Positions 19,997 through 62,701 of a DNA stretch of 64,000 nucleotides are shown in pieces. Origin of the DNA: Geosiphon pyriformis uo1 (lineage: Eukaryota; Fungi; Glomeromycota). The notes under the pieces were generated by a model, which was given only the letters and a program-made list of their open reading frames with translations, searched no databases and had not been told where the DNA came from. Position 1 is the first letter of the stretch. Each line of letters opens with the position of its first letter. The translations under genes and the position numbers were made by a program. The stretch lies in assembly GCA_016748015.1 (NCBI GenBank), contig JAAOMT010000012.1, forward strand, positions 175,583-239,582. Direction: 5' to 3'.

Positions 19997-20615
19997 ATTT
20001 TTGGAGGTTTAGCCCTGGTTCCGCAGATTTGTCCATTTTTTCCTCCACGATGCAGTAGCATGGGGGCTATCGTTTCGCGCTGCCCTCGTCTACTAGCTTC
20101 TTTCCAAGTTACTGCGGCATAACCCTCCCTTTCTATCTATCATTTATTATATACAATAGCTTTTTCCCCTTTTTTATCCCCCCTCAACTTGTTGAATTGA
20201 TGATCACTTAAAATAGATAGGGACAGCTGACCTGCGCCAGCAAGGAATGCTGATACTTTCTATCGTGAATCTGATCAATATGGTGCAAACCATTTATAGT
20301 CATCAAACAATTTATATAATTTTAAATTGTTTCTAGTCTTCCAATTTTAATAATATTAAAAAACTAAACCGTAAATATGATAGATTAAGTTCTCTTTCAC
20401 ATTTACGGTTTATTTTTTGAATTATATTATATTTTATAAAGTTATTAAAGTTTAAAATTAGCCACTTTTATTATTAATCTTTAATTTTCGGATGCCGATC
20501 AATCAGATTTTAGCCAATCAGCAATCATTAAAGTCACGTTACCACGTGATAAATCATCAAAGTATTATCATTTTCAGAAAGGCTTTCAATTAATATTAAT
20601 CTAATCTCTAGATGG

Positions 20616-22600
20616 TCACTTTTTTATAAAGATATAGTATCTTTCGGCCTGTGTGTTTTTTGCTGGTGACATGGCACCATTAACCATGAATATTTCATTC
20701 ACACCACCACCATATTCGGTTGTCATTATTGAAACAGAAATCCAGATATCAATATTGTTCACACCAAGCATCAAAGAAATCATAAAAGTACTATGAGCAA
20801 TTGTCAGAAAATTTGGAAATGTCATTCGTGTTCTATTTGTGATCTTGCATCTCTTTTGATAAACATTGAAAACAACCAGCTTTGGTGTTGGGAACAGCAG
20901 ATTTAAGATAAGAATTGGAATAACTGTGATGTGATTGGTTGTTGGTCCAAGAGTAATACTATAAGCAAAATGTTTGGTATTAAGAAACATTGTAAAAGAT
21001 CAATTACTCACCTCAACTTCTATATCTTAAAGCAAGAGCACGGCTCAAAATTTATGAAAAAAATTAATGCAATTAATTTTTTAATAAATGGATTCTGTGG
21101 TAAATTATAAATGGCTTATCTTTTTTTGTAACATTATATATACAACATATGTTTTTTAATGACTGATGTTTTGAACACTTTTTTTTCGTAAAATTTTAGA
21201 AATAAATTGTGTTCTATCTGATGAGAAAAATGATTAAAAGCTTAAAAATGTAAAGTATAAGAGTAGTATTCATAATTAAAATTTAACTTGATTAGGTCTG
21301 GAAAAAAAGAACTTGCAAATTGTTTTTGCAATCTATGAGAGGTAAAAAACAGTAAGCAACTTTGAAAATTTTGACCAGTATCATTTTTATTATAATGTGA
21401 ATACTTACTTTAAATTCACAAATAATCTTTCAATGACTATAATGTTGTGTTTCAAAAAATTGCTTAGATCTAAAAAATATACAAAATCTCTTGTAATAAA
21501 GATTTCTGGTTAAATTTAATATTTGAATAATGAATTATACCAAAAAGAAATATAATAACTAAAATACTTATCATGTATTTAATCGAATCATGATCTAGTT
21601 TTAGAATTGGTTTCCTAGACTGTAAAAGAAATTTCAATTGTTGAATATTTCAACAACTTATTAGAATGTAATATATAATAACTTATCACAGTAATCAAAA
21701 AACTTACATCAATTAATGTTAATTTAGAAGAATTAAGTTGGAATTGAAAGATTTTTGGCTTTATTTTGATTGGAAGAACTGAAGTTGTCTTAAAGCCTAT
21801 AATCTTGAATAGCTCTTTTTTGTTAGTATTGTATATTTTTTAACAAGTTTGTTTTGATGCAAAAAATATATAAAACATATTAGTTCAAGTAGATAAAACC
21901 CAGATTTTTTTGTAAAGGCCTAATAAACTTCTTATTTGTAAGAATTTGGCATTTTTAAAAATGTGTGAATTATTATTAAAATACATGACATTTTCGAAAT
22001 CAATTGCAAATCCTAATCAAATTCATAAATAGATGATATCTTTTTCAAATTTTCTATTAATGTAATATAGAAAACATATATCAAGTATTAAGTAATTGAT
22101 AAGAAAGAAGTACATAATACCAACTTTAATTATGTTTAAGAATTTTGGCTCTTTGATCACATTATAATATTTTGGATATTCTTTTTTGAATGATAAATTC
22201 ATAAATAATTTGGCATATTATCAATCACTGAATATGAAAATGAAAGGTCACAACTAAGCTGTAATACTAAAATTAAAATCTATCTTAAATATTCTTATTT
22301 ACTATTTTTTTAATTAATAATCATTTGCAATAAATCTTTTATTAACTCTAAAAGATTAGTTTTAATTTGAAAATTAGGTTTCTTTTAAATTGGTTGTTTA
22401 ATTGTTAATATTAGATTTTTTTGCCCAAATTCTTTGTCATAAGTCAAAGAGGTTTTTGTAGTAATTATTTTTATTGATGTCATCTGAATTTTCGGTTCAG
22501 ATAATTTTTCCAATTCCAATAAAATTTTTTTTTTGATGAATGCCAAAGAAGCTTTTTTTGATTGTTTTTTATTCAGAACTACAAAACAGAAATTAAAGTT
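20616..22600 (-). pseudogene. Spliced cargo gene: bromodomain (~21935-22350) plus C-terminal Rsc4-like beta-sandwich (ORF 20616..20990)
   Basis: Exons translate YAKLFMNLSFKKEYPKYYNVIKEP.FLNII / YEFD*DLQLI / ENVMYFNNNSHIFKNAKFLQ; GT-AG introns; last exon SITLGPTTNHITVIPIL...LMLGVNNIDIWIS...ERYYIFIKK. 5' end uncertain. Confidence 0.75.
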
Positions 22601-22762
22601 TAAATTAAAACCAAAGAGATTTAAAGAATAGATATATATCTAAGTTAAAAACACTATTTTTATTGTGATACAATTTTGTTGTACAACATTATACAGTTTA
22701 AATCCTTTAATTCTGTTTAAGTACTAATTACACATTAGATTAATATTGCATCACATAAAAAA

Positions 22763-24901
22763 ATGCCACTTCATTCTAAAAGAAAAAGAAAAGCTAAAAA
22801 TTAAGTTAGAAATACAAAAAGATCATATAAAAAAACACATCATACTACTTCAATAAATAATTATAATATTAAAGTAAATAAATTTAACAGACTAAATGTT
22901 AATAATAGAGAGTAAAACAACAAGAATAACAATAGATGAGATGATACAGAAGATATAAAAGCCACAATTAGAATAAATACAAAATTAAAAAAACTTAGTT
23001 TAATATAAAAAAACAAAAATTATCTAAAAAAAAAGAAGTGAGACTCTTATATAACAAAAAAGATACCAAAGTCAATCTATTATGATAAATATAGACCAAA
23101 TGGTTTATTTACTAATACAGCAGTCAGAACTAAAAAAATTACTACTTTTTTTAATATTAATGATGCTCAAACTACAGACATACAATAATCTAAATTTAAT
23201 AAATTTTCAAGCAATTCAAAAAGTGAAATTGATCTGTATGCTAATCAAATAAAAAAAGAGCAAAAGTTAAAAGAACATTTAGAAAAACAACATATTCAAT
23301 TAACTGTCTTTGAATATAATTAAAAAAGAGCTATTTTTGAATATCTTACCTTGTTAAATAATAATAATGGATATGAAAAAATTAATGCTAGTTTGAAAAT
23401 TGTTCAGAAAGTTTTTATTGATGATAGCATATGAAAAGCATAAAAAATTTAATATCTTGCAAAGTATTGGTTGCTTAATAATAAGTTTCTAACATCAAAA
23501 CATAAAAAACACCAAAAAATAATTAGAATAATTAATGATGAAGACATTGCAGAAAGATGTCATATTTGGATTAAAAACCAAAACTTTAATGTCACTTCAG
23601 CCATATTTAAAAAATTCATCAAGCATGAATTGTTTCCTAATATTGGAATAATGAAAAAAAAAACTATTAGTCTTATGACTGTAGTAAAATGGTTCAAAAT
23701 TCTTGGTTATTTATTCCAACAACATCATTAAGACTTATATTATGATAGACATAAAAAAATGATGTTTTGCAATCTTAAAAAGAATTTTTAAAAAAATATT
23801 TAAGCATGAAAAATATATATTAAAGTATAAAAATAAATTTATAGATTAAATATGTCTTAATTTACTTAATGAAAAAAAAGAAAGAGCTTTTGTAGTCCAT
23901 AATGAATGTATATTTTATTCAAATAATGACAACATAACATATGGGCTAAACATAGAAATTTGTCACTAAGAAAAAAAGAAAATAAAAGATTAATCATGGT
24001 CAGTGAATTTCTAACTGAAATTAATAGATGTTTATATTTACAACAAAATGATATAGAAAACTATTCTAATATATTGGAAGAGATACAATGCTATTTGCAA
24101 TCTAGTATAAATCAAGATAGTTATTAAACAACAGACTATCTTCTTAAACAAATTAAATGTAAAGCAATTCCAATTTTTAAGAAATTATATCCAAACTGTA
24201 CAACTGTATTTGCTTTCAATAATAGCTTTAATTATACAGCATTTAGTAAAAATGCTTTAATTGCAAGCAGAATGAATTTAAGTCCAGGTAAAAAGCAATT
24301 ATTAATGTGAAATACTTTTTTTGGATTAGATAATCAATTACAATTAATGATTTTTTTGGAAACATATTCAGATGAAAAACTTCAAAAATTGTCTAAAGAA
24401 ATTAAACAAGTATTAATAGAATAAGAAAAATGGCCATTAAAAGAATTAATATTAAAATGCCAAAAATACAAAGAAAAAATCAAAGATTCTTCAAAAGTTT
24501 CTTGTTGTGCACATTAAATAATATCTTTGGAATCTGATTTTCTTGCTCAAAAAAATGCAATTGAAGAATTAATCAAAAGTATGAGACATAAATGCATTTT
24601 TTTTCCAAAATTTCATTGTAAATTAAATTTTATTAAAAGATATTGGGAAACTGCTAAATAATATGCACATAATAAATGTGATTATTTATGAAAAAAATTA
24701 TAAAGAACAGTATTTGAAAGTTTTGAATCAGTATTTTTAATAACTATTAAATGATTTTCAAGAAAATATTGGTGTTATATGAATCTTTATAGAAAAAATC
24801 TTAGTGAAAAATTAGTAAAATATGCTATAAAAAAGTATAAATTTCATAGAAAAATTCCAGATAATATTCTTGAAGAATTAGACAAATTAAATAATATTTA
24901 A
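22763..24901 (+). pseudogene. DDE transposase (ITm superfamily, 'PKFHCELN.IE' type), ~710 codons
   Basis: Decayed motifs YYDRH, HNECIFYSNN, IMVSEFL, KAIPIF, FAFNNS, PGKKQ, CCA...DFLAQK, FPKFHCKLNFIKRYWE. Confidence 0.88.
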
Positions 24902-25199
24902 ACTTTGTAATACTGTATTTGGTTTTATATTATATAAAATTTAATAAAATTTTATTTTTTATTATAAATAATATATTAAAAACACATGTATATTAACCAA
25001 TAAAATTTAATTATATAAATAAAAATACATGAAGATTATTATTTAAAATTTCAGACTAATCTACATTTTTGATGATTATAAATAGTTTGCACTATATCAA
25101 TCTTATCTCTTTTTTTTTTATCAACACTAAAGTTGGTATAAAAGTAAAAGAGTTATGGTTAATAGTAGTGTGCATTGATATTATAAATTCTTTTTAAAT

Positions 25200-25610: not shown

Positions 25611-26801
25611 TATTTTTATTTAAATAAAATTTACTTGTTAAAAAACAAGATTGAATAAAAATTCAAATCTTTAATTGTTATAAAAAACTTTAATATGTTA
25701 AATATGTTAATGGTTTTTCTGTTTGCTATATATTAACATTAAAAAATAATTAAAAAGAGCATAATTATAAAAAAAATTACATATTAAAAAAACTATTTAT
25801 AACTTTCAAACTATTTAAAATAATTACCAAAAGAATAATTAAAATTACTTTTAAATTTAAAATAGTATATTTTCTATCTTAAAATCTTTTTTATATAATT
25901 TTTTTCACATTAACACAAATAGTATTTACATTTTTGAAACCATTGTAAATTATAAATTAAGTAGTTATTATGAAGGTTTAGTTAATTATATATATTATTT
26001 TTGGTAAATAAAAACATATAGCCATTTTGGTTATAATAAATATATTCTTTTAATAAATTAATCAGTATACCAAGTTTTAATCAATATATAAAACATTACA
26101 GAAAAATTTTTTTATATTTAAAACAATATGTAGTCTATACAGTTTAATAAAAATGTTGTTTTCAATTTAAAAATAAAACATATTTTGAAAATAAATCTTA
26201 TTAATTATAATTACTATTATTATTATTATTATTTTAACTAAAGTAAATTATTAGTAACATTATTAATTTCTAATATAATTTCTTCTTTTTGTTTTAACTT
26301 AAGAAAAATAATATTATAAACAATATTATAGTTATAAAATTGCATTAAATTAATATTTGGATAAGTTTAAATATGTTTTATACACACATATTTAAAACAA
26401 AATACACAAATACTTTAAATACAAATTTATAAAATAAAGCAATTTGGATTTCTTAAATAAATTCAATATAAAACAATTTAACTTCAAAATAAATTTTTAT
26501 ATTAAATTACTTAAAATTATTGTTAACTGTAAACAAAATAACTGGCAAAAAAAAACAGGTCTGTTATTTGATAAATATAAAAAAACAAATAAAATCTTTT
26601 GGTTAGAAATTAGTAATATAATAAAAATTAATGTTAAAGATTTTTTACTAATTTATAAAATATTTTATTAATCTAATAAAATAAAAAATCTGATATTTAA
26701 TATGTATTAAAAATATATTAGCTAGAAAATATTTCTAATTTTTTGTATTTTTTTTCAGAATTCTTAATCTAATTAACAATTTAAAAATGATAAAAAAAAA
26801 A

Positions 26802-29040
26802 CTCTTTGTCTCCTTAATTTTATAACCACAACCAGAGCAAAGAGTAAAAAAGCTGCACCTAATATCTGTCCTAAGATATCTAATAAAATTTCAACCAGAG
26901 AAGCTCTCTCTGTTGTAAAGGCACCTAGACAGAACGTTTTAGAAGCCTTCCCTTTACCCAGTAATCATGATAAGCTGTTTTTGGTGGCCACTGAAGCAAT
27001 TTCCTTATCTTTGGCTGGTTTCTCACCAGTCAAAGTTCCCTCAAAGAGACACACTTGGATTAGTCCCAGTGTTGCCTTCACCCCAACTAAGAGCCCAAAA
27101 GTTTTTAATAATAGACCAGTTAATAAGCTGGTCTTCCCCTCCATAGCTTTTCCATTTAGTACTGCTAGCACTTTCTCTTCAAAAAAATAGTCAAAAAGAC
27201 CAAAAGTTCAGAAAAGTGGGAGCAGTTGCTTGCTTTTGCTATTGTTACACCGAACCCATTTGTGGTTCTCAATAAGATCTTAGATAAAATCTCTATAGCA
27301 TCATCTGGCATGTCATTCAAGATGGGCCAAGATCAATCACTGGCTGTATTGCCAAATGTGGAGTCTTTCGGCAGATTATTGCCAGTTTTAAAAGCAAAAC
27401 AATCTCCTTCTGTTGGGTCACCTGTTCTTGAGAATTGGGCTGATTAAATGGAAACTGAATCTAGTTTCTGGTGCTACTTCTGGTGGTGCTTAAGCAACTA
27501 TTACTAGTTATCAAAAGTTTGCTGAATGGGTGGCCTCTATTCTGGTGCTTGATGCTACTTTTAAGATCCAATTGGCTTATATTAAGGCTGTTTTTCAGTT
27601 AGTACATGGTTTTTTGGGTGTAAAGTCAGTATTAAAAGACAATGTGAAGCTGTTTTGTGTGGAGTTTGCTTCTCAAGTGTCTTTAAAAGCTGTATTTTTA
27701 GTTGAGCTTACAAGCTCTGTATAATTTTTGAGTCTGGTTCCTCTTCTGTTGCTGTTGTGCTGCGTGATGTGCCCTTGGGTGTGTCTGCTGCTAACATTAA
27801 GACAGCTCTTAGTGTGTTTGGTAGTGTTGTTCATGTTGTGCTGAAGCCTGCTGGTGTTTGACAATATGTAGTAGTTTATTTTGAAAAGTTGGATTCTGCC
27901 ATGTCTGCTTTGAATCATTGGTCAGTATTGGTGGACAAGAATAATGTTAGAATTCTTCCCTTGGTGAATCAAAATAAGACTATTTTGTTTTGTAATAGGT
28001 TTAAGGCAAGTTGGTCAACCTTTCTCCTGGCTGTACTGTCTTTAAAATCAATAAAATGATTTCTCAAGTTGGTGGCCAGACTTGTTTTATTCCTTGGTCT
28101 TCTGATTCTGGTCATTATCTTCACTTCACTCTAGTTATGTTTGGCTCCCAAGCTGATTTGAATCTTGCTGTTGCCAAAACTGGTACACTTAGGAAGTGCC
28201 ATATCTGGTGGGAGACTCCTAATTGTTGGCATTGTTTTTGGTGTTAAAAAATAGGTCACTTGGCTGTAGACTATGAAGTTGCTTTATCTCCTTTTTCTAA
28301 GACTTCCAAGGTATTCAAATCATGTTCTGTTGGTTCTTTGTCTTATGCTAAGGCATCTGCTCCCCCTGTTATGTCTGAATTTTCTCCTTTGGTGGTTTTC
28401 ACCCCTTCTGTGGCTATTGTTAATCCTGTTGTTGGGTCCAGATTGGACTCTTTGGAAAAGCAAATTTCGAATTTGGCTGCTTTGGTAAAGTCTATTGTTG
28501 AACCTGTTGGCTCTTTGGTTGTTTTGGTATTTCGTTTCCTTAATGATAATGCTGTTAAAGCTGTTCAGGTTGAGAAAAATTTCTTTTCTATGAAATATGC
28601 TTCTAACAATTTTGCCAATCTTTTGGTTGGTGTGTCTAAGAACATTGCTTGTTTTAGATCTGAAGTTGACTTTGGTGGCATGGATTATGATAATATGCAG
28701 ACCACCAAACTTTCTCTCTTAAGTAAGGACACTGTTGAATGTGTTATAGCTTTGTGGCAGATGTCAGGTGCTGAGATTAAGAGTTGTGTTAAATCTACTA
28801 GATTATTTCTTAGTGAGTTTATTTTTGATTCTAGGAATCTGAATGGTGTTATTGAAAAAATTTGTGAGTTGGGATTATTCTCACCTCCTATTGTTTCAGC
28901 TTAGTTAGTGTTTTGACTGACTCGGGTGGTTTGTCACATGTAGAAAATGCGTGATTCACATCTAATTTGTAATCCCTTAGTGACACATAGTATTAAATAG
29001 CATTTGGACACACTTTGTTAAAACGTAAATAATAAAAAAA
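26802..29040 (+). mobile_element. ORF1-only non-autonomous LINE derivative (half-LINE), copy 1
   Basis: Single decayed ORF 26822(ATG>ATA)-28904 with RRM-like segments, a CCHC knuckle (CFWC*KIGHLAVD) and a coiled coil (RLDSLEKQISNLAALV); short 3' UTR then poly-A; no ORF2. Confidence 0.85.
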
Positions 29041-29459
29041 CCAATTTATTAAAAATTAAAAAATAAAGTATAAATCAAGCAAAATAAATAGCAGATTTTT
29101 AATTAATATTCACAAATTAATATTGAATAAAAGTAAAATTAAGTCTATTAAACATAAAATTGTTATTGTTAACTTTTTAAAAAATTATTAAAATTATTAA
29201 AACAAATTATTTTCTATTATAATATTTAAGATAATAAGTTTAATAAAAAAAAATCCCAAAAAAGTATTGTAAAAAAACTAAATATACTATATTGTTATCA
29301 TGTTTAGTATTAATTAAATTAAAAAAAAACATATTTGTAAATAAAAAACAACTTTTTTTAAATAATAACATTATAATAGTTAATAATATAAATAAACTAT
29401 AATTTAAAAGTAAAAATTTAACAAATAATTTTAAGATAAAAAAGACCAATATGTTTTAA

Positions 29460-30073: not shown

Positions 30074-33000
30074 TATTACAAATGATTATTTGGATGGGTA
30101 AAATAAATAACAAACTTGTAACTTGGTGTTTAATTAATATAATGGTGTTGATTTTTAAAGGTTTTGGTAATCTGAAAGTTTTAGTTTGAGTTTTTTGTAT
30201 AATAAACAGAGATTCAAGTGTTATTTTATTTATAGCTTTTCAGAATTGCAATTTCATCAAATTTTTTTCTCAGCATAGTGGCCAGTAATTTTTTTGGTAA
30301 GCTATTTTTAATTCTATGAATGTTTTATTCTTGTTTCACAGGTCTTTTACCAGTTCCTTTGACATAAGTTACTTTATGTGTTAATTTTTAATCAATTAGT
30401 AAATAATAAACAAAACAAAAGAACAGAAAAAAAAATAAAAAAATAAGCCAAAACAAAAAAGAGTTAGTATTCTGTTAATAGCAATAATTAAGAGCTATTA
30501 GTCTAATGTAGTTAAGTATTAGTTGTTATTAACATGGAGTATTGATAATGAAAGATTGATCAAGATTCTCAAATAGTTAGTAAGAACATAAATTGAATAA
30601 AATAATAAGTATTTTTATTAATATTTAATGATTTTACTTTGGTTAATAGTAACTATCCTTGAAGTAATTTATTTTAATAAATAAGAAAGAGATTTTCCAA
30701 GTCAATTCAATATTTTTCTTGTTTCTATTACTACTGCTATATATATATAATTTGGATTATATAATATCACACATATTTTTGAACAATATTTCATAATTTT
30801 TTAAGCAATACTCATATTGTTAAACAATGTATTATGATTTCTAACAATGCTCTATATTGCTGAGCAATGTGCTATAATTTTTTAACAATGTTCCACATTG
30901 CTGAACAATGTGTTTATATGCTAAATACTATTCTTTTATTGGTCTATTTTTTTATCTGTTTTCTTTACTACTTTTTTTGTACTCTTTTTTTATGAGTAAT
31001 ATTATCTTTTTCTTTAATATTAAGCTCTGTTAAAATCTTTGTTTTGAATTAATTCCATTATTTTTTTTTCTAAGACTGTTTGTTCAACTCTGGTTTTTAT
31101 GTTTTCCACTTGTGAGTTGTTTATTCTTCTTTATTGGTTAATGGTTATTGTTTCCATTTTTGAGTGTAGTAGTATTTCTGAATAATTCTGAAATATAGTA
31201 TATAGTCAATAAATTGTTCTAACATGTAGTGTTGAATTTGTCTTCTTTCTAATAAAGTTTTTAATTTGTTGTATTATTTCTTGATTGAATATTCTTCTAA
31301 ATTTGTTAATATATAATTTTTGAATATTCAGTTTTTGTCTCAACTAATAGTAACAGTATAATATTGAAAGTTGTTTTGTCTATTGGTTCCAATTTTTTTT
31401 GTTAGTTCTACTATTGAAACCATGATAGATATTTTCTTAAACATACTCTTTACTTTTTCTATTATTTTATTTGACTAGTGTCTTATTTAGTTTTATGGTT
31501 GTTAGTATGATATGGTTCTTTTTTTTCTGTTTCTTTGAGTATTCTAGTAATAAATAGCCTGGTGATTAATAACAATTTCCATTTCTAATTATTGTTAATT
31601 CAAGGCTTAGAGTAATTGTTAAGCTATTGTGTAGATATAATCTAGTATTTCTATTTTTTATCATTGCTTTTGTTGCATATACTATGTTTTTATATTATTC
31701 TGTTTAATTAATTTGATGTATTGTATTAATAATTATAATTGGTTCTAAATCTTGTGAAATCTCATTTGGTTGGACTAGTATTTATTGTACTTCTAGTTGT
31801 AGAATATTATTGATAAATAATGATGTTGTGTTGTGATATGGTTTCAGTTAATCTTTATATGCTACTTTAGCTAAAATTTTGTTGTCACATCTTAGTTTAT
31901 AAGCTCTATTTTTTAGAATTTCTTTAATGTAGAATGATTCATTTTATTTGAAGTTAATTTTTCACTCTATTGTTTTTCTGTTTTGGTATAATATAAGAGT
32001 ATTTTGTCTCCAATCTTGAATTCAATTGGTTTGTCTGATAGTTGGTTATCATGTTGTTTTTTTTGCTTTTTTTGTAACTTTTATATATTGTCAGCTGTTT
32101 TCTGTCTTTTGTTTTTTAGAGTTTCTATTAAGTCATATGTTTTTTTTAACAATATTTCTTGAAAGTTGCTTTCTGTTATTGGTTTAGTTAGATACATATT
32201 GACTTTTATCTCAACTGGTAATGTTGCTGTTTTACTATAAACAAGTTCAAATAATGTTGCTTGTATGATATCTTGTTTCATTATCTAATAAGCAAATAAT
32301 ACTGATAGTATAAACAAATCTCATTTGTCCTGGTTTTTTTAATTGATTTTGGTAATTGCTTTATACAATGTTCTGTTAAATCTTTCAACTAAACTGTTTG
32401 TTTATAGATAATATAATAATGATAAAAGTCTCTTAATTCTAAATCTTTAACTTAATTTTGTTAAGATTCTGTTTACAAAATAAGTTCTTTAATCTAATAA
32501 CAATTCTTTTAGACATCCATGTTGACAAATCAAATTTTAATGAACAAATTTGGCTACAGATTTTGCATCTGCTTTTTGAATTGCCTTTGCTTTTGGTCAT
32601 TTAATGAAATAGTCTATGACTACTTCTATATATTTGTTGTCTTTGCTAGTAATTGTTAATAGTCCAACTAAATCAATTTCAATTTAATCAAATGGTTGTT
32701 CTATTTTAATTGGTCTTAACAGTTTACTGGGTTTTGTTTCTTCTCTTTTCTGACAAGCATTACAATTTTGAACATATTAGATGATATCTGAATACATAAA
32801 TGACCAATAATATCTTTTCCTGGTTCTTTCTATAGTTGCTTCTTTATAGAAATGTCCTGCTGTTAAATTTAAATGCATGTTGAATAGTATTGTTTTTTTT
32901 TCTAGTTCTGTGATTACTCTGAATAATTGCTCTGGATCTTTTTTGTTTTTCTAATATAATATATTTTGATGAACAATAAAATATTTTAATTGTTGTTTTA

Positions 33001-36000
33001 TGTTGTTTTATTCCTTTTAAAATAATTTCTTTTTAAACTATTGGGTATTAATATAATATTAGAGTTATAGATATTTTTGTGTGTTCATCTTTTGTTATAT
33101 TTTTGGGTTGAAATGTTCTTAAATTTGTTTCATTTGTGACAAACCATTAGCATTTCCGTTTTTTTTTTCTTTTTTTATAATATACTGTATATTTGAATAA
33201 TGAAAGTTTTATTTTTTATCTTGCATGATAACTGTCTTCAAATTTTTGCTTTTGAATTGATGTTAATCTTTTGTGATCAGTGTATATATCTAATTTCTGG
33301 CTTAAATACTCTTCTATTTAATAACTGCTTAATAGATAACTAAGTATTTTAGTGCTGGTGTTCTATAGTTTTTTTCAGCTGGACTTAAACTTCAACTAAC
33401 ATATACTACTGAATGTTCTTATCCATCTGGTTTTTTTTGATATAGTACTACTTTCAATACTTGACCAGATGTATTAGTGATAATAATAAATGACTTGCTA
33501 TAATCTAGATAAATTAGTATTAATGCTTAGATGAGCTTTCTTTTTAGTATATCAAAAGCTTCTTGCTGAATTTTTGTCTATTCATATTTTATATTCTTGG
33601 TTTGGAGCTGGTAGAATGGTTAAGCCAGTTTAGAGAAATTTTGGATAAAGTAGTAGTAATATTCAGTAAATCTCAAGAATGCTTATAATTCTATCAAATT
33701 TGTTGGTACTGAAAAGTTTTTTATTATTTTGATCTTATCTGGATCTGTTTTGATGTTATCTTTGCTTATAATATGTTCCAAGAATTTCAGTTCTGTTTTG
33801 CCAAAAAAGCATTTGGTGATATTTAATTTTAGTCTTGTTTATCTTAGTCTTTTGAACACTTGCTGTAAATAATGCAAATAATCATCAAATATTTTTGAAA
33901 ACATATTAATGTTATCCAAATACATGACAACTAATTTCCATAATAGTTTGGTGTAAATAATTTCCATTAGTTATTGAAAGATGGCTAAAGCATTGGTTAA
34001 GCCAAATGGCATTACTTTAAACTCAAAGTTTTTCTCTCTGATAGTAAATATGGTCTTCTTTTTGTCAGCTGGATTCATGATTACTTGCTAGTAACTACTA
34101 TCTAAATCCAGTGTTGAGAACCATTTTTTTTTTCCAAAAGCATTGAATAATTCCTGAATTCATAGAATTGAATAGCTATCTCCATAAGTAATACTATTGA
34201 GTTTTTTATAATCTACACAAAAGTGGATTTTTTCATTTTTTTTGCAGATTAGTACTACTAATGATGACTATGAACTTATTGATGATTAAATTAATCTGTT
34301 GTCTAATATCTGGTTGATTTCCTGTTGAATAATTTCATGGCTTGCTGGTGGTATTCTGTATGCTCTTTGTTTAATTGACATTGTATTTCCAGTGTTAAAT
34401 GATGTCAGTTCTGCCAAATTTGTTTTCACTTATAAAGATATTAGTAAAATTGTTAAGTAACATCTTAAGTTGCATCTGTTGAAACAGGTCTAAGTTTTCC
34501 AAGTTCATTTGTTTCAATTGTTCTTGTTGAAGCAAATAATATTTGTTTTGTTTATATATGATATAATATCTATATATCTACATAATTGTGGAAAGTCTGG
34601 AATAAAGTTTGGTAGTTGATTTTCAACTTTGGTGCTTAAGTATCTGATGGTGGTTTTTTTTGGTATTTCAATAGGGTTTTCAGTTGTATTGTAAATGAAA
34701 ATTTTAATGTGATTGTAGTTTTTAGCCAGTATATAGAAATTAGTGATTTTAATTTTTTCTGGTTCACAAATTGTAGCTTTTACTTCAAAAATTTGAGCCT
34801 AATCTTTTACTTTTCTCTCTATATTTAGTATATACTAGTCATATGATGGAATGAAAATTGATTGATGAGTGGAGATAATTTCTCTCTTGTTAATAACTTT
34901 TTCTTCTGCCCTATTAACTAGTATATCTATTCTATTTGTGAATTTGAATTTATTTATTTATTTATTTTTTTTACTAACATTAATTAAGCTATTTTAACCA
35001 GAGACAGAAATATTGCCTGTGTTATCTTTTTATTTAATTCAATAGTATAAGCCTTTTTGAAATTATTTTGTAGTATTGCAATAATATTTCTTATATATTC
35101 TACATCAATTATTTTTCCTCTTATATTAATCCCTTTTTTTGCTAAACTACTTTTAAATATTAGCTTAACCATAGTTGTTACTGGAATTTCCAGTGCTATT
35201 TTTAGATTAATGCAGATGTGTAAATATAGTTCCAATTTAATGGCATTTTTTCCTAAATATTTCAAATTAAACTCTATATTAGTATTATGTGTTTGTTTTG
35301 ACATAATACCTTCATTGTTATCACTAAACCATTTGAGTTTCTGCTCTTTAAAAAAATTAGAAAGTGCAATATATTGTTCTGAGTTTAAATCAGGATTTGA
35401 ATTGTCACTGTTGTCATTGTTATTTTAAATGAAGCTGAAACTATTGTTATTATTATTGTTGTCAGAGTTTGAATCACAATTGAGTGGTAATTCTGATTCT
35501 GTTTCACAACTGCTAATTGGTTCTTTTTTTTCTGAGATTGTGTAGATTATGTGTGATAATAAATTGTAAATAAGGTTACAATTATTACAATATTAAAAGT
35601 TACAGAAAATTAAGCAGTATTAACAAAGTCAAGTATTTAGCTGCTTTAAATGCTGTTTTTGCTCTTATCTAATAAGTGTTAAGTTTTGGTAATGTTTATG
35701 AAATTCTTTTGGGCCTGTTTTAATATTAAGAAATACATCAGGATTGAGAATAAGAATAATGTCAATTGGTTTTGGTAAGTTATTTTTTATTTTAAGAATC
35801 TTATTAGGTGAAGTATTTTCTATTTTGGTATTTGTTATTTGCCAGATTTCATCCTCGTCATGTAGATAATCATCCAAGTAAGAAATTGCTTAATGCCAGA
35901 CTGCATTAATAGATGTTTTACAACTTATCTAGTTACTTATGAAGATTATATACTGGCATAAAGCATCACATATTCTTCCTTATCTAGGAATGTTATTCCA

Positions 36001-39000
36001 CATTCCTTTATCAAGTAACTGTTTTCCACAAGCAAGACATGATTTGTTGTCTTATTTGTTTTGTCTTTTTGGGCAGCCATAGTGTTTTCTATGACATAGT
36101 TTGCAGTAATAATGAGTTCTGGTCCAGTGATCTTTGTCAGATAAAATTCAGGCTTCTATAGAGAACAGTTTTTTTTTGCAGTTTTTGTATCTAAGCAGAA
36201 TATATAGTGGTTTGGATTTGGTATTAGTTGAATAAAATTTTTTCCAGTTATTAATAGTTTTAGTAAAAGTATTGTTTTCTTGTAACTTATCTTTTTTTTT
36301 CTTTTCCCTTGTTGTTTCACAAGAGTATTAGTGGTAGTTCATTGTAGTTGATATCAGCCTATGAGACTTGGTAGGCTTCTCAGATAGGTTTTTTTTTTCT
36401 TCCTCAAATTCAATAAGTAGTGTCAGTATAATGGTTTTGAAGTAGTTGTAAGTAACTAATACTCAAATATATTGGCTGTTTTGGCTGAGTTGTAATTCTT
36501 GGGTGGTCTAATTGAATACTGTATTGGTTTTGGTCAGCCAATTGTTACCCAACTAAGGCTTAGTACTGGATGGCTTCTATAACTAATATTTTGATAAGAG
36601 TGGTGATGCCATTGACTTTAAACAGAAAGTTATTAATCTTACCAATTGGAGTTTTTGTGGCTTCATCAATGGTAATAATTCTGGTGTTGACAACATAATT
36701 AACTCAATAACCTAATTGGTCCATAAGTTGTTATGTGATGATGCTGTCTGTTGAATCACTATTAAGAATTAGTCTAATAGAATGGCCATCAACTTTGATA
36801 TTAATATATATTACCATAATAAGTTTGGTATTAAGGATAGCTTTATTAAAAAGAGGCATTATGATGGATTCTTCAATTTCAAATAGAAAGATAGCAGCTA
36901 ATGATTTGTTGTTGGTAATGGTTGCTAAAAGTATGTTGTAATTAATTGTTTGCTTCGGATTGAGTTCTAGGTTATTGGATAAAATGTCTTTTGGAATAAC
37001 CAGAAAACTTAAATAATTCTGGGAACTTGAATTTTGAGAGTACTCTGTTTTTGAACTTCACAAACGTGATTCTAATGACTGTTGTAATGAGCTGGAAATC
37101 AGTTAATGTATTATCATTATCAATTGCCAGTTTTGTTAAATGTAGATGATTCTCAGTCTTGGATTACTAAATATTTAAGCTGAGTTTTGTGGCAGTGTTT
37201 AAATTGTGATTAACTGATAAATTATTGGTAACTGTTAAAATTAATAGATAACTGGTGCTGAAGTTTGATATATTGGTGGTACATATATCTACTGCTGTAT
37301 TATTGATAGATAATTTGGTTGATAAGATTCTTAATTTGGATAATAATTCAGAGTTTGAATCCAGCAATTAGAGTTTTGATATTGATTTTCTGATTGTTAA
37401 TTATTTAATTTCAATCAGCAGTCTGTTTTTAAGTATTTTTGTTTATCACAGTAGTGGCAGACATATTTTTTACTCTCACTATTGATTTGATAAGAATAAA
37501 CATGACTGATTTTCGAATTAATTAGAGCTTTCTTGATTATTGTACCATTGTGAAAGTTAATAAATGGCCTGATTGTTAGCTAAATATCCTTCCAATTTTT
37601 GATTAATTGAGTTACTGAATTGTTTTAACTTTGAGTCTAAGTCAGATAATTTATTCATCACTAAATTTACAGCTTAGACATAATTAATTTCTAATTTAGT
37701 TGATTCAAAGTTTCTAATATAGATAACTACAGCTTAAAGATTGGCTAGATGTAATAGGCATATGTGTTATAGAATACTACTACATAATTCACAAATAAAC
37801 TAATTCAAGATTTGTGTTACTGTAAAATAATCAGCATTAATGACTTGAATTTGGTGCAGATTGTAATAAAAGCATTCCAAGTATGTAGTAATGCTTTTAG
37901 TTTCTCCTTGTTTAATAATGATAAAAATATTTGTCAATTAATTGATATTGTTATTATTACTAAAATACCTTAAAAATTCAATCTTGAAATTGTTGAAAGT
38001 TTGGGGTTTCTGTGCCAAGCTTTAATATCATGAGTTAGTAGTATCTTGTAAAAAATATAAGATTACTTAAAAAGTTCTGGCATTGTTCCAATTATTAGCC
38101 ATGATTGTTTTGACAATATTGTTTAACCAAGCTTGTGCATTGTCTTTTTTGCCAGTAAACTTTTTTAATTTGACAATTGGTGCATATACTATTGGTGCTA
38201 ATAGTAGTTGTTGTGGTTGCTGTTGAAGTTGTTGCTAAAGTAGTGGTTGTGGTTATTGTTGTTGTTTAGCAATCAGAACAACTGGTTAGTTTATTATGAT
38301 TACTGGAGGTAAGTTTTGGGGAACAATAAGAGTAGAGTTTGAATTTTTTTGGTTTTGTTGGATTTAAACAATTAGAGTTTGAATTTCCAGATTTTCTGAG
38401 ACCAGGTTTTGGATATTTTCTGATTGCTATCTTCTTTTTTTTCAGAGTTTGTTATTTTCCAAGAACTGGTAACTCCAAAATCTGAAAGTAGTAGTGATAA
38501 TTAAAGTTCTAATGACATTATTAATCATGAATTAAATCCTTCAAAATAATTACTGTAGGTTCTCTATAGTTTAGCTTTTTTCTGTTTATTTTGAAATAGA
38601 ATTCTGGCTAATGGTGTTTTTGCATTTGCTGTAGATGCATCTACTGATATTATGTTGATGATACTTTCAGTATGTAATGATATAATAAATATATTGGTGA
38701 TTTGACTTTTGGTTTCTTCCAAGTGGATGGTTGTATCTGCTTTAGAGTTCCTGTTGGTGTTTGCCATCTTTCTTTTTTTTTGTCAGCAAAAATGATAGGA
38801 AATTTTTGTTTAGTATATTTTTCAATTTCTCTGTTTATTTCCATAATTAGGGGCATAAATAGATAGTTTTGTGGAAGTATAATGTGCTAAAGTAGTTCAC
38901 TAAAAAAATTGTTAAAAGCAAATTCTAAATCTTCTTAATCTTTCAAGTAGTATATGATTTTTTTGTTGACATAACAATTGAAAACTGATTCTGTTGGCCA

Positions 39001-45900: not shown

Positions 45901-47068
45901 TACTTAAGAAGCCTACCAAGTTTCCTGGGCCAACACAGAACACAATGAGCTACTGCCAATACCTTCATAGAACAACAACAGCAAAAGAAAGCAGAGTGAA
46001 GAACTTACCTGAAAAGCTGACCAAGCCTGGAAAACCAACAACAACCAGGAAGAACAAATAAATTGGGAATAGAAAGAAGACAAAAAAGGAAAAGGAAAGG
46101 GGAAGAAAGAAGAACCAACAACCAACAGCAACCCCACTTATAATTCCTACACTACACTCCACCGATCCACTTATTGCCATCCAAAACTAATATGCATTGA
46201 TTGCAGTAAGAAATTGTTGTCAATGAGCACTTGTTGTGGTGACAATGAGAAATACACTTTGGCAACAAAATTCTACTGTTACTCATGTGTCATTGAACAC
46301 TTTGAAAGGCCAAAACAGGTTAGAAAATAGGACAATGAATTATGCTTGGCTTGTAGAAAAACTCTTCTGGACAAAGAAATGTGGAATAACATTCCTGGGT
46401 AAGAAGGAACATGTGACAAATTGTGTCAATACATGATTCTCATAAGTAACTGGATGAGAAAAAAAATGTCCATAGACACTGTTTGAAGACAAGCTGTCAA
46501 ATGTCTGGATGGGTGTCCACACAATAATAACAAAATCTGGCAAATAGCACTTGCCAAAATAGAAGGAGTGACCCCAAAAGAAATAAAAATAATTAAAAAT
46601 AATCCACCTGAATCTATAGAACTTGACTGGGATCCAAAACCAATCATAAATCTCCTAGATCCAGAACAATTTTACAAACATTATCAAGAGCTAGCACCTA
46701 CTATGAAAGAACAAAAGCAATGTTTGGAGCAGTTGAATACTTGATTATGTCAATATTGCTTAATTTCCTATGACTTTCAATATTGTAATGAGTGTGACTT
46801 CATTTACAATCCACCACCATGCATAATCTACACAATCTCAAAAGAAGAACCAATCAACAGCTGCACATTGGAATTGGAATCAGTTTTCAATCCTGATTCA
46901 AACTCTGACAATAACAATGATGAAAACACCAGTTTCAGCTCCATGCAATATGGCAACAAAAATATCAATAATTCAAACTCCAATTCAAATCCCAAAATAT
47001 ATATTGCACTTCCTGATCTCTCTAAAGAGCAGGAACTCAAATAGTATAATAATAATAATGAAAATATC

Positions 47069-47465
47069 ATGCCAAAATGTGCACATGATACCAATGCAGG
47101 GTTTGATCTAAGATATTCAGAAAAAGAAGTCATTAAATTAGAACCAAATTTGCACACATGTATTGATCTCAAAATAGCTCTAGAAATTCTAGCAACAACC
47201 ATAGTTCAACTAGCATCTAAAAGTAGTTTAGTGAAAAAAGAAATCAACATCAGAGGAGAGATAATTGATGTAAGATACATAGAAAATATTATTGCCATAC
47301 TACAAAATGATTCAGAAAAAACCTATATTATAGAACCAAATAAAAAGATAGCACAGGCAATATTCTTACCTCTGGTGAAAATATCTTAGTTAGTTTTAAT
47401 GGGAAAGAGGGAAAAATTAGGTATAACAGCAAAAGGGATACAGAGATTTGGATCAATGGATAGAA
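47069..47465 (+). pseudogene. dUTPase domain of element D
   Basis: AHDTNAGFDLRY, KSSL, GEIIDVRYIE, KIAQAIF, GIQRFGS. Confidence 0.9.
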
Positions 47466-48103
47466 TAGACATACCAGTCAATATAGCAAAGGAAGAAATG
47501 GTTGACAAAGGAGAAATTATCTCAACTTGTCAATCAATTTTTATTCCACTATATGACTAGTATATGTTAGTCATAAAAAGAGAAGTAAAGGATCAAGCTC
47601 AATTGTTTGAAGCAGAAGCCACTATTTGTAAATCAGGAGAAATTGGACTCACTAATCTCTACATATCAGCCAAAAGCCCCAAAAACATCAAAATTTCCAT
47701 CTATAACACAACTGAAAAGGTCATCAAAATACCAAAAAGAACTATTATTGGATATTTAACTACTCAAGTTGAGAATCAACTACCAAACCACATTCCAGAT
47801 TTTCCACAATTTTGTGGATATGTGGACATCACTTCACAAACCATCTATAGATGAAGTGAATGTTATTTGCTCCAACCAGAACAATTGGAACAGATAAACA
47901 TGGAGAATCTAAACCCACTCCAATAAATGCAACTGAAAATGTTACTCAACAATTTTAATAACATCTTTGCCAGTGAAAATGAATTTGGCTGCACCAATAT
48001 TATTCAGCATCAGATTAAGACTGGAGATGTGATGCCAATTAAACAAAAAGCATACAGAATATCACCAGCTAGCCATGAGATCATTCATCAAAAAATTAAC
48101 TGA

Positions 48104-49294: not shown

Positions 49295-49324
49295 AAACAT
49301 TTCAACCCAAAAATATAACAAAAG

Positions 49325-50700: not shown

Positions 50701-51390
50701 AAATCAAACAATAAAAGAGTAGATAAAGACACAGTATATGTGACAAAAGCAACCAAAAAAATGGAAATACCAGACCATATTCACACCATAGCTTAGCAAT
50801 TATTCCAGGCATTAAGTCAACAATCATTAGACATGGAAATTATTGTTAATAACCAAACAATTTGCTATTAAAACACCAAAAAAAAGACAAAGAATACACC
50901 ATATTAGCAAATACCAAAGAATGATAAAAACAGGTCAAATAACATAATAGAAAAAGTAAAGAACACTTTTGGGAAAATACCTATTATGGCACCAACAGAA
51001 AAACTTACAAAAGAGAATTGAAAGCAATGAACAGAACAACTTTCAATATTATACTATTACTACCAATTAGGTCAAAAGTTGAATATTCAGGAGTTGTATA
51101 TCAACAAATCCAAGAGAGTATTTAACCAAAACATAATACGGCAAATTGAAGAATTTATTGGTAAAAAGACGAACTCAACACTATATGTGAGAACAATTTA
51201 TTGACTGCACAACATATTTCAAAACTATCCAGAAATACTGTTACACTCTAATATGAAAACCATAACCATTAATCAATGGAGAAAAATGAACAAGATACAA
51301 GTAAAAAACGTGAAAAATAAAATTGAACAAACAATACTAGAAAAAAAAGTATTAGAGCTAATTCAAAATGAAGATTTCGACAGAACTTAA
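50696..51390 (+). pseudogene. Extra ORF between integrase and PPT (unknown function)
   Basis: Reads LSILYYYYQLGQKL...VRTIY*LHNIFQNYPEILLHS...WRKMNK...EDFDRT*; homologous sequence in element C (31022-31730, -). Confidence 0.6.
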
Positions 51391-58448: not shown

Positions 58449-61400
58449 TAGTGCAAATTATTTATAATCATCAAAAATGTAGATTAATTTAAAATTTTAA
58501 ATAATAATCTTCACATGTTTTTATTTATATAATTAAATTTTATTGGTTAATATACATGTGTTTTTAATATATTATTTATAATAAAAAATAAAATTTTATT
58601 AAATTTTATATAATATAAAACCAAATACAGTATTATAAAGTTTGAATATTATTTAATTTGTCTAATTCTTCAAGAATATTATCTGGAATTCTTCTATGAA
58701 ATTTATACTTTTTTATAGCATATTCTACTAATTTTCTACTAAGATTTTTTCTATAAAAATTTATATAACACCAATATTTTCTTAAAAATTATCTAATAGT
58801 TATTAAAGATACTGATTTAAGATTTTTAGACACTGTTCTTTGTAATTTTTTTCATGAATAATCATATTTGTTATGTGTATATCTTTTAACAGCTCCCTAA
58901 TATCTTTTAATAAAATTTAATTTGCAATGAAATTTTGGAAAAAAAATGTACTTATATTCTATACTTTTAATTAATTCTTTAATTGCATTTTTTTGAATAA
59001 GAAAATCAGATTTCAAAGATATTACTTGACATGTACAATAAAAAACTTTTGAAGAATTTTTGATTTTTTTTTTGCATTTTTGGTATTTTAATACTAATTC
59101 TTTTAATGGCCATTTTTCTTATTCTATTAATACTTGTTTAATTCCTTTAGACAATTTTTAAAGTTTTTTATTTGAATATGTTTTTAAAAAAATCATTGAT
59201 TGTAATTAATTATCTAATCCAAAAGAAGTATCTTGCATTAATGATTGCTTTTTACCTGAACTTAAATTCATTCTGTTTACAATTAAAGCATCTTTACTAA
59301 ATGCTATATGATTAGAACTATTATTGAAAGCAAATATGGCTGTACAATTTAAATATAATTTCTTAAAAATTGGAATTGTTTTACATTTAATTTGTTTAAA
59401 AAAATGGTCTGCTGTTCAATAACCATCTTAATTTATACCAGATTGTAAATAGCATTATGCTTTTTCTAATATATTAGAATAGTTTTTTATATTATTTTGT
59501 TGTAAACATAAATGTCTATTAATTTTAGTTAGAAATTTACTGATTATAATTGATTTTTTATTTATTTTTTTTCTTAGTGGCAAATTTCCATGCTCAGTCC
59601 ATATGTTACACTTGTCATTATTTGAATAAAAAATGATAGACTATAAAAACTTTTTCTTTCTTTTCATTAAGTAAGTTAGGATGTATTTGATCCATAAATT
59701 TATCTTCATACTTTAACATATACTTTTCATGCTTATATATTTTTTCTAAAAATTCTTTTTAAGATTACAAGATGTTATTTTTTTATGGCTATTATAATAT
59801 AAGTCTTAATGATATTGTTGGAATGAATAACCAAGAATTTTGAATTATCTTATTGTAGTCATAAAACTAATAGTTTTTTCCTTCATTATTCTAATATTAG
59901 GAAACAATTAATGTTCAATGAATTTTTTAAATATGGCTGAAGTGACATTAAAGTTTTGGTTTCTAATCCAAATATGATATCTTTCTGCAATGTTTTCATT
60001 ATTAATTATTCTAATTATTTTTTAATGTTTTCTATGTTTTAATGTTAGAAGCTTATTATTAAACAACCAATACTTTGCAAAATATCAAATTTTTTATGTT
60101 TTTCATACACTACCATCAATAAAAATCTTTTGGGCAATTTTCAAACTGGCATTAATTTTTTTATGTCTATTATTATTATTTAACAAGGTAAGATATTCAA
60201 AAATAGCTCTTTCTTGATTATATTTGAAGACAGTTAACTGAGCATATTGTTTTTCTAAATGGTTTTTTAATTCTTACACTTTTTTTATTTGACTAGCATA
60301 TAAATCAACCTTACATTCTGAATTGCTTGAAGATTCATTAAACTTGAATTATTGTAAGTCTGTAATTTAAGCATTACTAATATTAAAGAAAGTGGTAATT
60401 TTTTTAGTTCTAACTGCTGCTTTGGTAAATAAACCATCTGGTTTATATTTATCATAATAGGTTGATTTTAATATTTTTTTTGTCATGTAAGGGCCTCACT
60501 TCTTTTTTTTTAGATGATTGTTATTTTTCCATATTAAATTAAGTTTTTTTAATTACAGCTTCCATATTTTCTGTATTATTCTATCTACTGTCATTATTAT
60601 TGTTCTACTCTTTATTACTAATATCTAATCTGTTAAATTTATTTATTTTAATATCATAATTATTTATTGAAGTGATATGATGTGTTTTTTTATATAATCC
60701 TTTTGTATTTCTAACTTAATCTTTAGCTTTTCTTTTTCTTTTAGAATAAAGTGGTATTTTTTTATATAATGCAATGTTAATTTAGTGTGTTATTAGTGTT
60801 TGGACAGAATTAAAGAATTTGAATCATGTAATGTTGTACAACAAAATTATATTACAATAGAAATAGTATTTTTAATTTAGATATATATCTATTTTTTAAA
60901 TCTCTTTGGTTTTAATTTAAATTTTAATTTCTGTTTTGTAGTTCTGAATAAGAAGCAATAAAAAAAGTTCTTTTGGCATTTATTAAAAAAAATTTTTTAT
61001 TGGGATTGAAGAGATTATCTAAGCTAAAAATTTAAGTAATATTAATAAAAATAGTTATCACAAAAATTTCTTTAATTTATAACAAGAAATTTGGACAAAA
61101 AAGTTTAACATTAATAATTAAACAACCAACTTAAAAAAAACCTGATTTTTAAATTGAAGCCAATTCTTCAGAGCTAATGAAAAATTTATTGCAAATAATT
61201 GTTAATCAAAAAAATAGTAGGTAAGAATATTTAAAATAGATTTCAATTTTAATATTACAACCTAGTTATAATCTCTTATTTTTATATTTAGTAATTGACA
61301 ATATGCCAAATTATTTATGAATTTACCATTTAAAAAAAAATATCCAGAATATTATAATGTAATCAAAAAGCCAAGATCTTTAAACATAATTGAAGTTGGT

Positions 61401-62701
61401 ACTATGTACTTTTTTCTTATTAGTCACTTAATACTTGATATATGTTTTTTATATTATATTAGTAGAAAATTCGAAAAAAATATTATCTATTTATGAATTC
61501 AATCAAAACTTACAATTAATTTCAAAAATGTCATATATTTTAATAATAATTTACACATTTTCAAAGATATTAAATTCTTACAAGTAAAAAGTTTATTAGG
61601 TCTTTACAAAAAAATCTGAGTTTTATCTACTTAAACTAATATGCTTTATATATTTTTTGCATTAAACAAACTTATTAGAAAATGTATAACACTAACAAAA
61701 AAAAACTATTCAAGATTATGGTCTTTAAAACAACTTCAGTTCTCTTAATCAAGGTAAAGCCAAAGATCTTTTAATTCCAATCTGATTCCTTTAAATTAAT
61801 ACTAATTGATATAAGTTTCTTGATTATTGTAATAAGCTATTATATATTATATTCTAATAAATTGTTGAAATATTCAACAATCAAAATTTTTTATAGCCTA
61901 AAAAACCAATTCTAAAACTAGATTATGATTTGGTTGAATATATAATAAATATTTTAGTTAATATATTTTTCTTTGGTATAATTCATTATTTAAATATTAA
62001 ATTTAACCAAAAATCTTTATTACAGAGGATTTCATATATCTCTTAAATCTAAGTAATTCTTTGAAACATAACATTATAGTCATTAAAAAATTATTTGTGA
62101 ATTTAAAGTAAGTATTTACATTATAATAATTCAAAATTACAAATAGAGCACAAATAACATTCTCAAATTTTTTGACAATTGCTCATAGTACTTTTATAAT
62201 TCTTTTGACATCTGGTGTGAACAATATTAATATCTGGATTTTTGTTCTGGTAATAACAACCAAATATGATGATAGTATAAATAAAATATTCATGGTTAAT
62301 AATACTGTGTTATCAACAAAAGACACATAGGCCAAAAGATATTATATCTTTATAAAAAAGTGATCATTTAAAGATTAAATTAATATTAATTGAAAGCCTT
62401 TCTGAAAATGATAATACTTTGATAATTTATTACATGGTAATATAACTTTAATAATTTCTAATTGGCTAAAATCTGATTGATTGGCATCTGAAAATTAAAG
62501 ATTAATAATAAAAGTGATTAATTTTAAACTTTAATAACTTTATAAATTATAATATAATTCAAAAATTAAACTGTAAATATAAAAGAAAAGAACTTAATCT
62601 ATTATATTTACAGTTTAGTTTTTTAATATTATTAAAATTAGAAGACTAAATATAATTTAAAATTATATAAATTGTTTAATGACTATAAATAATTTGCACT
62701 A
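58449..62701 (-). mobile_element. IS630/Tc1/mariner-type transposon copy 2 (4.25 kb; ~550-bp deletion in the cargo gene)
   Basis: TIRs TAGTGCAAATTATTTATAATCATC and ...ACTATAAATAATTTGCACTA, TA on both sides; transposase ~58642-60757 (-); flanks differ from copy 1. Confidence 0.92.
60942..62363 (+). pseudogene. Bromodomain/Rsc4-like cargo gene, copy 2 (bromodomain exons ~61171-61583)
   Basis: ELMKNLLQIIVNQKN / QYAKLFMNLPFKKKYPEYYNVIKKPRSLNIIE (61292-61394, flanked by AG and GT) / YEFNQNLQLI / YFNNNLHIFKDIKFLQ-GT. Confidence 0.78.

Follow-up and report, generated by a model that had tools for sequence, protein, structure and literature searches.

The stretch of DNA analysed here (the window) covers 64 kb of the genome of Geosiphon pyriformis, which is assembled into 128 Mb on 792 contigs, and harbors two copies of a transposon that carries, in addition to its transposase gene, an intron-containing gene fragment (the cargo) derived from a gene for an RSC-type chromatin-remodeller subunit. 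Copy A, located at 20281..25094 on the plus strand, is a complete element of the long subfamily, running from one terminal inverted repeat (TIR) to the other, in which ~30% of the ancestral C/G positions now read T/A. Copy B, a member of the short subfamily, lies at 58449..62701 on the minus strand, in the opposite orientation to A and with TA at both sides. In copy A, the TIRs (~27 bp) occupy 20281..20307 (plus strand) and 25068-25094, and are bordered by a TA target-site duplication (left 20279..20280, right 25095-25096). Inverted repeats of ~27 bp, whose ancestral sequence begins TGGTGCAAACCATTTATA, were found in both copies. The transposase gene (22763..24910, plus strand) and the cargo are arranged head-to-head, both inside the TIRs, with the cargo exons of copy B spanning 61302-62360 on the plus strand. 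An earlier reading made without database searches (the sequence-only reading) had predicted an intron-containing gene in this arrangement, and the gene was found where it had been placed.

Aligned with the reverse complement of copy B, copy A matches end-to-end at 87% identity, and 525 of the 548 differences are transitions. Self-comparison of the window indicated that the homology between the two copies breaks off precisely at the element termini, and that their flanks are dissimilar. A 537-bp segment (20851..21386 in copy A), the loss of which takes away exons 7 and 8 along with the beginning of the last cargo exon, is missing from copy B and from the entire short subfamily. Since A and B belong to different subfamilies and have unrelated flanks, they represent two separate insertions; alignment, termini and subfamily difference all agree with the sequence-only reading on this point.

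The two copies in the window are part of a large family. Matches in the genome number 61 at the DNA level, 126 for a 126-residue piece of the transposase and 147 for the cargo protein. Rather than being confined to the two copies in the window, one 33-nt cargo motif was found in 51 copies, setting the size of the family to at least 51. At least 30 further loci on other contigs contain the same TIR-to-TIR unit flanked by TA, and the cargo is present in all of the copies examined (30/30). Among family termini gathered from 32 loci, TA borders 39 of the 39 terminus matches listed, which stem from 26 loci. The next base outward varies among these termini and the duplication is therefore TA, ruling out a 4-bp TATA duplication.

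The transposase gene of copy A contains many stops created by C>T changes, and in the consensus it forms a single open reading frame (ORF) of ~716 codons; on the basis of this retained ORF, the element is predicted to be autonomous. Only the last catalytic region of the encoded protein matches known profiles, and it does so below threshold, with 20.6-24.4 bits against DDE_3 (PF13358, cut-off 28.6) and 20 bits against the IS630 family profile NF033545 (cut-off 100). No match to the N-terminal 600 residues was obtained in Pfam or PDB sequence searches, no helix-turn-helix was matched by Pfam in N-terminal pieces or in a 632-residue metagenome homolog, and a PDB sequence search with the transposase likewise returned no match. 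Relatives of the transposase (40-77% identity) were identified in Rhizophagus, Cetraspora, Lobosporangium, Laccaria and soil metagenomes. The Lobosporangium relative is named a Tc1-like transposase, PF13358 is carried by some of the homologs, and there are Atlas clusters with DDE_3. The TA duplication, the TIRs, these relatives and the sub-threshold profile matches would make the element a member or close neighbor of the Tc1/mariner-IS630 superfamily.

An RSC-type gene fragment captured with its introns

The genome contains 21 bromodomain loci, only one of which is similar to the cargo. This locus, on contig C728 (L035/L045, the latter corresponding to G000:C728:289000-298999), encodes KAG9290591.1 (P0001, 1278 residues), in which Pfam identifies a bromodomain, ankyrin repeats, a second bromodomain, a BAH domain (75 bits across the full profile length), a long disordered region and, scoring just under its cut-off, an RSC4-type Ig-like tail. 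Element positions ~340-2090 (~20616-22380 of the window, minus strand) are collinear, exon by exon, with KAG9290591.1. Intron positions are identical in the cargo and the host gene, and their intron sequences are not alignable; the common positions indicate that the element captured genomic DNA. Together with the presence of the cargo in every copy examined, the match to KAG9290591.1 and its introns bears out the proposal that part of the gene for a host chromatin-remodeller subunit was captured by the element and has been mobilized along with it.

The cargo consists of at least nine host-derived exons, all on the minus strand of copy A, that cover the second bromodomain, part of the BAH domain and the RSC4-type Ig-like tail. 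Of the two tandem bromodomains encoded by the host gene, homology begins at the second, and its 5' limit is exon 1 (22300..22380), which contains the start of this bromodomain (..ELMKDLLQMIVDQKDS). Exon 2 (22120..22222) encodes the ZA-loop region (..YAELFMDLPSKEEYPEYYDVIEEP..) and exon 3 (21935..22054) the remainder of the domain, including the FENAMYFN asparagine motif, with 1-nt deletions near 22036 and near 21997-22000. These are followed by exon 4 (21707..21838), encoding a linker (KMYNTNKKELF...), and exon 5 (21563..21616). The BAH domain starts in exon 6 (21408..21488; GDFVY..IIVIERLF) and continues through exon 7 (21302..21340; LQKRFAGSFFFRPDQ) and exon 8 (21143..21220; ..FYEKEVFKTSVIEEHML), directly after which homology to the host gene breaks. 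The last cargo exon (20616..21044) encodes the Ig-like tail, with a stop near that of the host gene, the protein of which is 3 residues longer. The cargo thus lacks the host gene's first bromodomain and ankyrin region, as well as ~1 kb of host sequence with the remainder of the BAH domain and the disordered exon.

In profile searches, the cargo scored above threshold for the bromodomain and below it for the BAH domain and the Ig-like tail. In the better-preserved copies, exon 2 alone exceeds the Pfam cut-off for bromodomains (PF00439, 21.7 bits) with 27.4 bits (copy L044) and 23.9 bits (copy L021), matching profile positions 12-43 of 84, and five copies pass this cut-off in a genome-wide scan. 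The bromodomain proposed by the sequence-only reading is hence recovered, with exons 1 to 3 where that reading had put them. Its description of the cargo as an Rsc4-like bromodomain gene held for these exons and fell short for the rest, since the cargo runs further, to 20616, and is RSC1/2/4-like, combining bromodomain, BAH domain and Ig-like tail. Whole-protein comparisons of the cargo were made with the NCBI model P0002, on which the BAH domain scores 30.1 bits versus a cut-off of 30.8 and covers profile positions 2-58 of 121 only. For the RSC4 Ig-like C-terminal domain (PF22994, cut-off 24.2), cargo and host reach 18.5 and 23.0 bits, respectively, and their Ig-like tails are 65% identical.

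A host ortholog of matching architecture is present in Ambispora, and Calcarisporiella shares the architecture without the BAH domain. The C-terminal Ig-like tail is also shared with Paraglomus, Actinomortierella and other early-diverging fungi. This distribution among other fungi identifies the host gene as the ancestral form. The architecture of the host RSC-like gene (proteins P0001, P0016 and P0004) mixes features of Rsc1/2 with those of Rsc4 in an unusual way, with ankyrin repeats between the bromodomains. A TAF1-like bromodomain gene located 32 kb before the window (L031, G000:C340:139000-148999), which has an intron inside its bromodomain, was also considered as the parent of the cargo and rejected, as it shows no similarity to it.

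Lesions common to the copies and neutral decay

Changes of the C>T or G>A type make up 95% of all changes among copies, each of which has lost 14-47% of its ancestral C/G. The mutated fraction is highest in CpG (0.57), with all other contexts affected (0.26-0.42) and a preference for a 5' T (0.42). This amounts to hypermutation resembling repeat-induced point mutation (RIP) in a glomeromycotan, seen across the whole family (copy A in the window and loci L001-L030, L043 and L044). One copy, L046 (G000:C54:5978-9186; annotated KAG9305422.1), is near-unmutated. It is located at the end of a 9-kb contig, which cuts the element at position ~2057, and shows 98% identity to the C>T-reverted consensus. 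The reversion of C>T and G>A changes between copies, on which the sequence-only reading had relied to reconstruct the cargo, is validated by this agreement with a near-pristine copy.

The availability of a near-pristine copy also allows the lesions of the cargo to be read directly. Compared with the host DNA, exon 3 of L046 presents two 1-nt deletions, located 36 nt apart after KIRKGY and after DLQLI. Neither site shows indel variation among 29 aligned copies and, genome-wide, the T-run at DLQLI is shifted in 51 of 51 copies, with no instance of the in-frame form. As a consequence of these two -1 frameshifts in exon 3, a whole four-helix bromodomain with its BC-loop asparagine was not found in one frame. 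Further downstream, a deletion of ~1 kb cuts through the BAH domain. L046 has in addition a private lesion, a 10-nt deletion in exon 2, and, like copies L002 and L004, is open across exon 7 and the last exon. As judged from its reading frames, the cargo would be unable to encode an acetyl-lysine reader. Because the frameshifts are common to all copies examined, including the unmutated one, and the BAH domain is truncated, the cargo appears to have been dead at the time of the burst that gave rise to the copies. The caveat raised by the sequence-only reading, that a shared frameshift after DLQLI might mean that the cargo had died before these insertions, is in this way confirmed, and strengthened by a second frameshift 36 nt upstream.

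Once inserted, the copies decay neutrally, without purifying selection. The mutated fraction of C/G is similar in exons, introns and transposase (0.32-0.46) and drops to 0.26 over the terminal 330 bp. Within the last exon, this fraction is 0.40 for synonymous, 0.35 for non-synonymous and 0.33 for stop-making changes, and in exon 2, too, the three classes of C>T change occur at equal rates. An exceptional preservation of the last exon was considered and rejected, as its mutated C/G fraction (0.36) is similar to that elsewhere. Numerous copies of the short subfamily have the last 77 cargo residues free of stops, at 80-96% identity and within open frames of 228-289 residues (e.g. G000:C708:423863-424090, C778:248382-248609, C689:524450-524680). 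This may reflect a more recent origin of the short subfamily or a lower exposure of it to C>T mutation.

Probable transcription, age and possible function of the cargo

Evidence for splicing comes from X2, one of three sequencing runs of one sample, for which no library type is on record; another of the three, X1, behaves as genomic DNA, and none of the runs recorded as RNA contains the element. Contigs from X2 join position 21838 to 21935 and 21613 to 21707, and exon pieces stop at 22054 and 22300; none of these exon joints occurs in the genomic run X1. All the exon borders of the X2 contigs are GT-AG on the minus strand of the consensus. The X2 contigs also define four additional 5' exons, found in them only, at 22483-22580, 22643-22891, 23054-23240 and 23350-23485 on the minus strand. 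None of these exons is homologous to the host gene; they run antisense to the transposase ORF, are bordered by GT-AG in the consensus and contain stops in most frames. One contig of 1016 nt runs upstream through all four, and spliced contigs at a depth of 140 cover, in antisense, the first 720 nt of the transposase ORF. Differences between X2 and copy A are almost solely A>G and T>C, and X2 therefore derives from a copy with fewer mutations; it presents no indel in exon 3. The spliced contigs probably originate from L046 or its close kin. The cargo thus probably gives rise to a spliced chimeric transcript whose 5' exons stem from the transposon, and the antisense overlap at 22483-23485 could feed RNA silencing of the element. 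According to the sequence-only reading, the lack of any intact or expressed copy would reduce the element to passive, Pack-type capture. The first half of this proposition is supported, as no copy is intact, but the second is not, given the spliced contigs.

The explanation that best accommodates these results, to which we assign a probability of about 0.78, is an autonomous Tc1/mariner-like family that passively carries an already dead fragment of an RSC-type gene (transduplication); the anatomy of the element, the capture, the shared lesions and the neutral decay are the parts of it that the analysis establishes. The element would have acquired the 3' two thirds of an RSC-type subunit gene, comprising bromodomain 2, the BAH domain and the RSC4-type Ig-like tail, as genomic DNA with its introns. 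Positioned inside the TIRs and head-to-head with the transposase, the cargo would then have been copied passively at every transposition. By the time of amplification it would already have been a pseudogene, with two -1 frameshifts, a ~1 kb deletion in the BAH domain and neither first bromodomain nor ankyrin region. Transcription would continue from the element, with splicing at the inherited sites yielding a chimeric RNA with transposon 5' exons, and all copies would, after insertion, decay neutrally under the RIP-like C>T process.

Several observations weigh against this explanation. The protein identity between the cargo and the closest host gene is ~62% (~38% of residues differ). Over 309 homologous codons of the cargo consensus and the host gene, the proportion of synonymous differences (pS) is 0.75, and thus saturated, and that of non-synonymous differences (pN) is 0.17; no stop is found in any homologous exon frame of either the consensus or the pristine copy. 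The combination of saturated synonymous sites and absence of stops implies that the source was long constrained and is not the present host copy. It also points to purifying selection until shortly before the burst, which would fit as well with a gene that once functioned on the transposon. Moreover, there is an open model of 290 residues (KAG9305422.1), made up of the partial BAH domain and the Ig-like tail, that might have a function. The assignment of the transposase, in turn, is based on sub-threshold profile matches and the TA duplication, and transcription of the cargo is deduced from the exon joints of X2, a run of unrecorded library type.

The foremost alternative is a long-lived functional cargo, in which a truncated RSC-like protein (bromodomain 2, BAH domain and Ig-like tail) benefited the element through targeting or anti-silencing and was lost just before the last burst. 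Specifically, an RSC-like reader, expressed from a transposon promoter by way of the exons antisense to the transposase, would have been maintained on the transposon since about the split between Geosiphon and Ambispora, and lost only in the lineage of the burst. Besides the substitution pattern and the ~310 stop-free homologous codons, this history is favored by the age of the cargo. A tree of the shared regions places the cargo in one clade with the Geosiphon host gene and its Ambispora ortholog (support 88/93, internally unresolved), on a branch of its own of length 0.51, compared to 0.12 for the Geosiphon host gene and 0.31 for Ambispora, making the split as old as these genera, and none of the 21 bromodomain loci in the genome is a closer paralog of the cargo. 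The recent capture of a long-constrained paralog or foreign ortholog, however, yields an identical pattern. In addition, no relative carrying the cargo was identified, since Rhizophagus loci with a related transposase have no cargo nearby and searches with the cargo protein match only Geosiphon models and the Ambispora host ortholog, none of the 51 copies is intact, and the copies show no sign of selection. A maintained reader is thus considered improbable, and the role that the sequence-only reading had envisaged, in which the cargo reads acetylated histones to guide targeting or counteract silencing, is not upheld in view of the shared frameshifts, the truncated BAH domain, the lack of purifying selection and the absence of cargo in Rhizophagus. 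Overall, the data fit three histories: the recent capture of a diverged paralog since lost, capture in an Archaeosporales-like species followed by horizontal transfer, or a long functional life on the transposon. We infer that the source was a diverged paralog or a foreign ortholog, captured not long before the burst. Under long maintenance of the reader, intact versions would be predicted to survive in Archaeosporales that have yet to be sampled, or else in subfamilies of greater age. That the cargo diverged long ago without codon decay makes it testable whether a foreign gene arrived by horizontal transfer or a once-working reader was carried.

A cargo that is active today has still less to recommend it. 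Here the cargo would act as a dominant-negative RSC fragment (the 290-residue BAH-half and Ig-like product, or an N-terminal half bromodomain) or as an antisense RNA regulator. The depth of the spliced contigs (140) and their antisense course across the 5' 720 nt of the transposase ORF would be in line with such activity, as would the existence of NCBI models for these ORFs (P0002, P0007, P0013). Against this, C>T changes in both exon 2 and the last exon build up equally fast whether they are synonymous, non-synonymous or stop-making, the short subfamily has lost three exons at no visible cost in copy number, and the upstream exons carry stops in most frames. An activity of the present copies is therefore regarded as very improbable.

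Lastly, the mirrored order of three repeat families around ~41,000 might suggest that A and B are arms of one large inverted segmental duplication and the cargo merely a host gene beside a transposase, but A/B homology ends at the TIRs with unrelated adjoining flanks, the copies belong to different subfamilies, and the at least 30 TA-flanked TIR-to-TIR loci on other contigs refute this idea. The mirrored arrangement, within ~20280-62700 of the window, involves three unrelated families: the element described here (87% pairwise identity), a 2.3-kb family (26784-29058 / 55385-57693; 85%) and a 5-kb family (30794-36057 / 46325-51601; 75%).

Relation to known systems and annotation of the family

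The closest documented parallel is provided by hAT transposons carrying histone H3 in Dothideomycetes such as Pyrenophora tritici-repentis and Pseudocercospora fijiensis (PMC3538342, PMC6710886). The H3 gene borne by these elements occurs in tens or hundreds of copies, which C>T hypermutation has inactivated, so that it becomes visible only in a deRIP consensus; the elements generate an 8-bp duplication and captured an intron-less transcript copy, the parent of which is the resident H3 gene (PMC6710886). In both systems, an autonomous fungal DNA transposon, predicted to be so in Geosiphon, transduplicates a chromatin gene, and the resulting copies are amplified and then inactivated by C>T changes. 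The Geosiphon element differs in being putatively Tc1/mariner-like, with a TA duplication, in carrying a multi-exon genomic fragment with introns, in residing in a glomeromycotan host and in having a cargo only ~62% identical to its nearest resident gene.

In plants, Pack-MULEs and other Pack-type elements harbor fragments of host genes between their TIRs, give rise to chimeric spliced transcripts and encode mostly non-functional products; Pack-MULEs are non-autonomous and of the Mutator type. The Geosiphon element resembles them in containing a host gene fragment between TIRs in many copies and in the probable production of a chimeric spliced transcript, and differs from them in keeping a transposase ORF. 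A recent parent gene in the same genome, which characterizes Pack-type capture, was not found, the closest gene being 62% identical in protein with a pS of 0.75. The anti-silencing VANC proteins of VANDAL/Hiun elements and the chromodomain integrases of chromoviruses are intact, conserved and shown to act. As in these systems, a mobile element bears a chromatin-related gene or domain; unlike them, the cargo frame is broken in every copy of the Geosiphon element and no selection is seen. With its two bromodomains, BAH domain and RSC4-type Ig-like tail, the Geosiphon host gene is comparable to yeast Rsc1, Rsc2 and Rsc4 and to animal polybromo, from which it departs by the ankyrin repeats between its bromodomains; the cargo, for its part, comprises only the second bromodomain (broken), half of the BAH domain and the tail.

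Literature searches on gene capture and bromodomain cargo returned no earlier bromodomain cargo and no such capture in arbuscular mycorrhizal relatives, and searches on Geosiphon transposable elements and RIP yielded no Geosiphon-specific study of transposable elements among the matches listed. The present case documents the transduplication of a multi-exon chromatin-remodeller fragment by a putatively autonomous, Tc1/mariner-like element in a relative of arbuscular mycorrhizal fungi. The coexistence of one near-pristine copy with dozens of mutated ones also provides an internal clock for the RIP-like C>T process.

A practical consequence concerns annotation, since several NCBI gene models of the Geosiphon genome are pieces of the cargo, some of them fused to real genes. 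In models P0040, P0041 and P0042 (Geosiphon KAG accessions), cargo pieces are joined to real genes that include an iron-sulfur succinate-dehydrogenase-like protein and a methyltransferase; these models are likely annotation chimeras at insertions of the short subfamily. Pieces of the element also occur within long open frames. At G000:C706:961436-961540, 35 C-terminal residues of the transposase (97% identical) are found in an open frame of 1273 residues, and at G000:C689:580053-580274, 74 residues of the last cargo exon (95% identical) are found in one of 884 residues. Both pieces could be exonised or chimeric. Finally, older or more distant subfamilies are represented in this genome at, for example, C416:37914-38261 and C702:1429921-1430277, and loci on contigs C702, C416 and C706 contain more open transposase frames.

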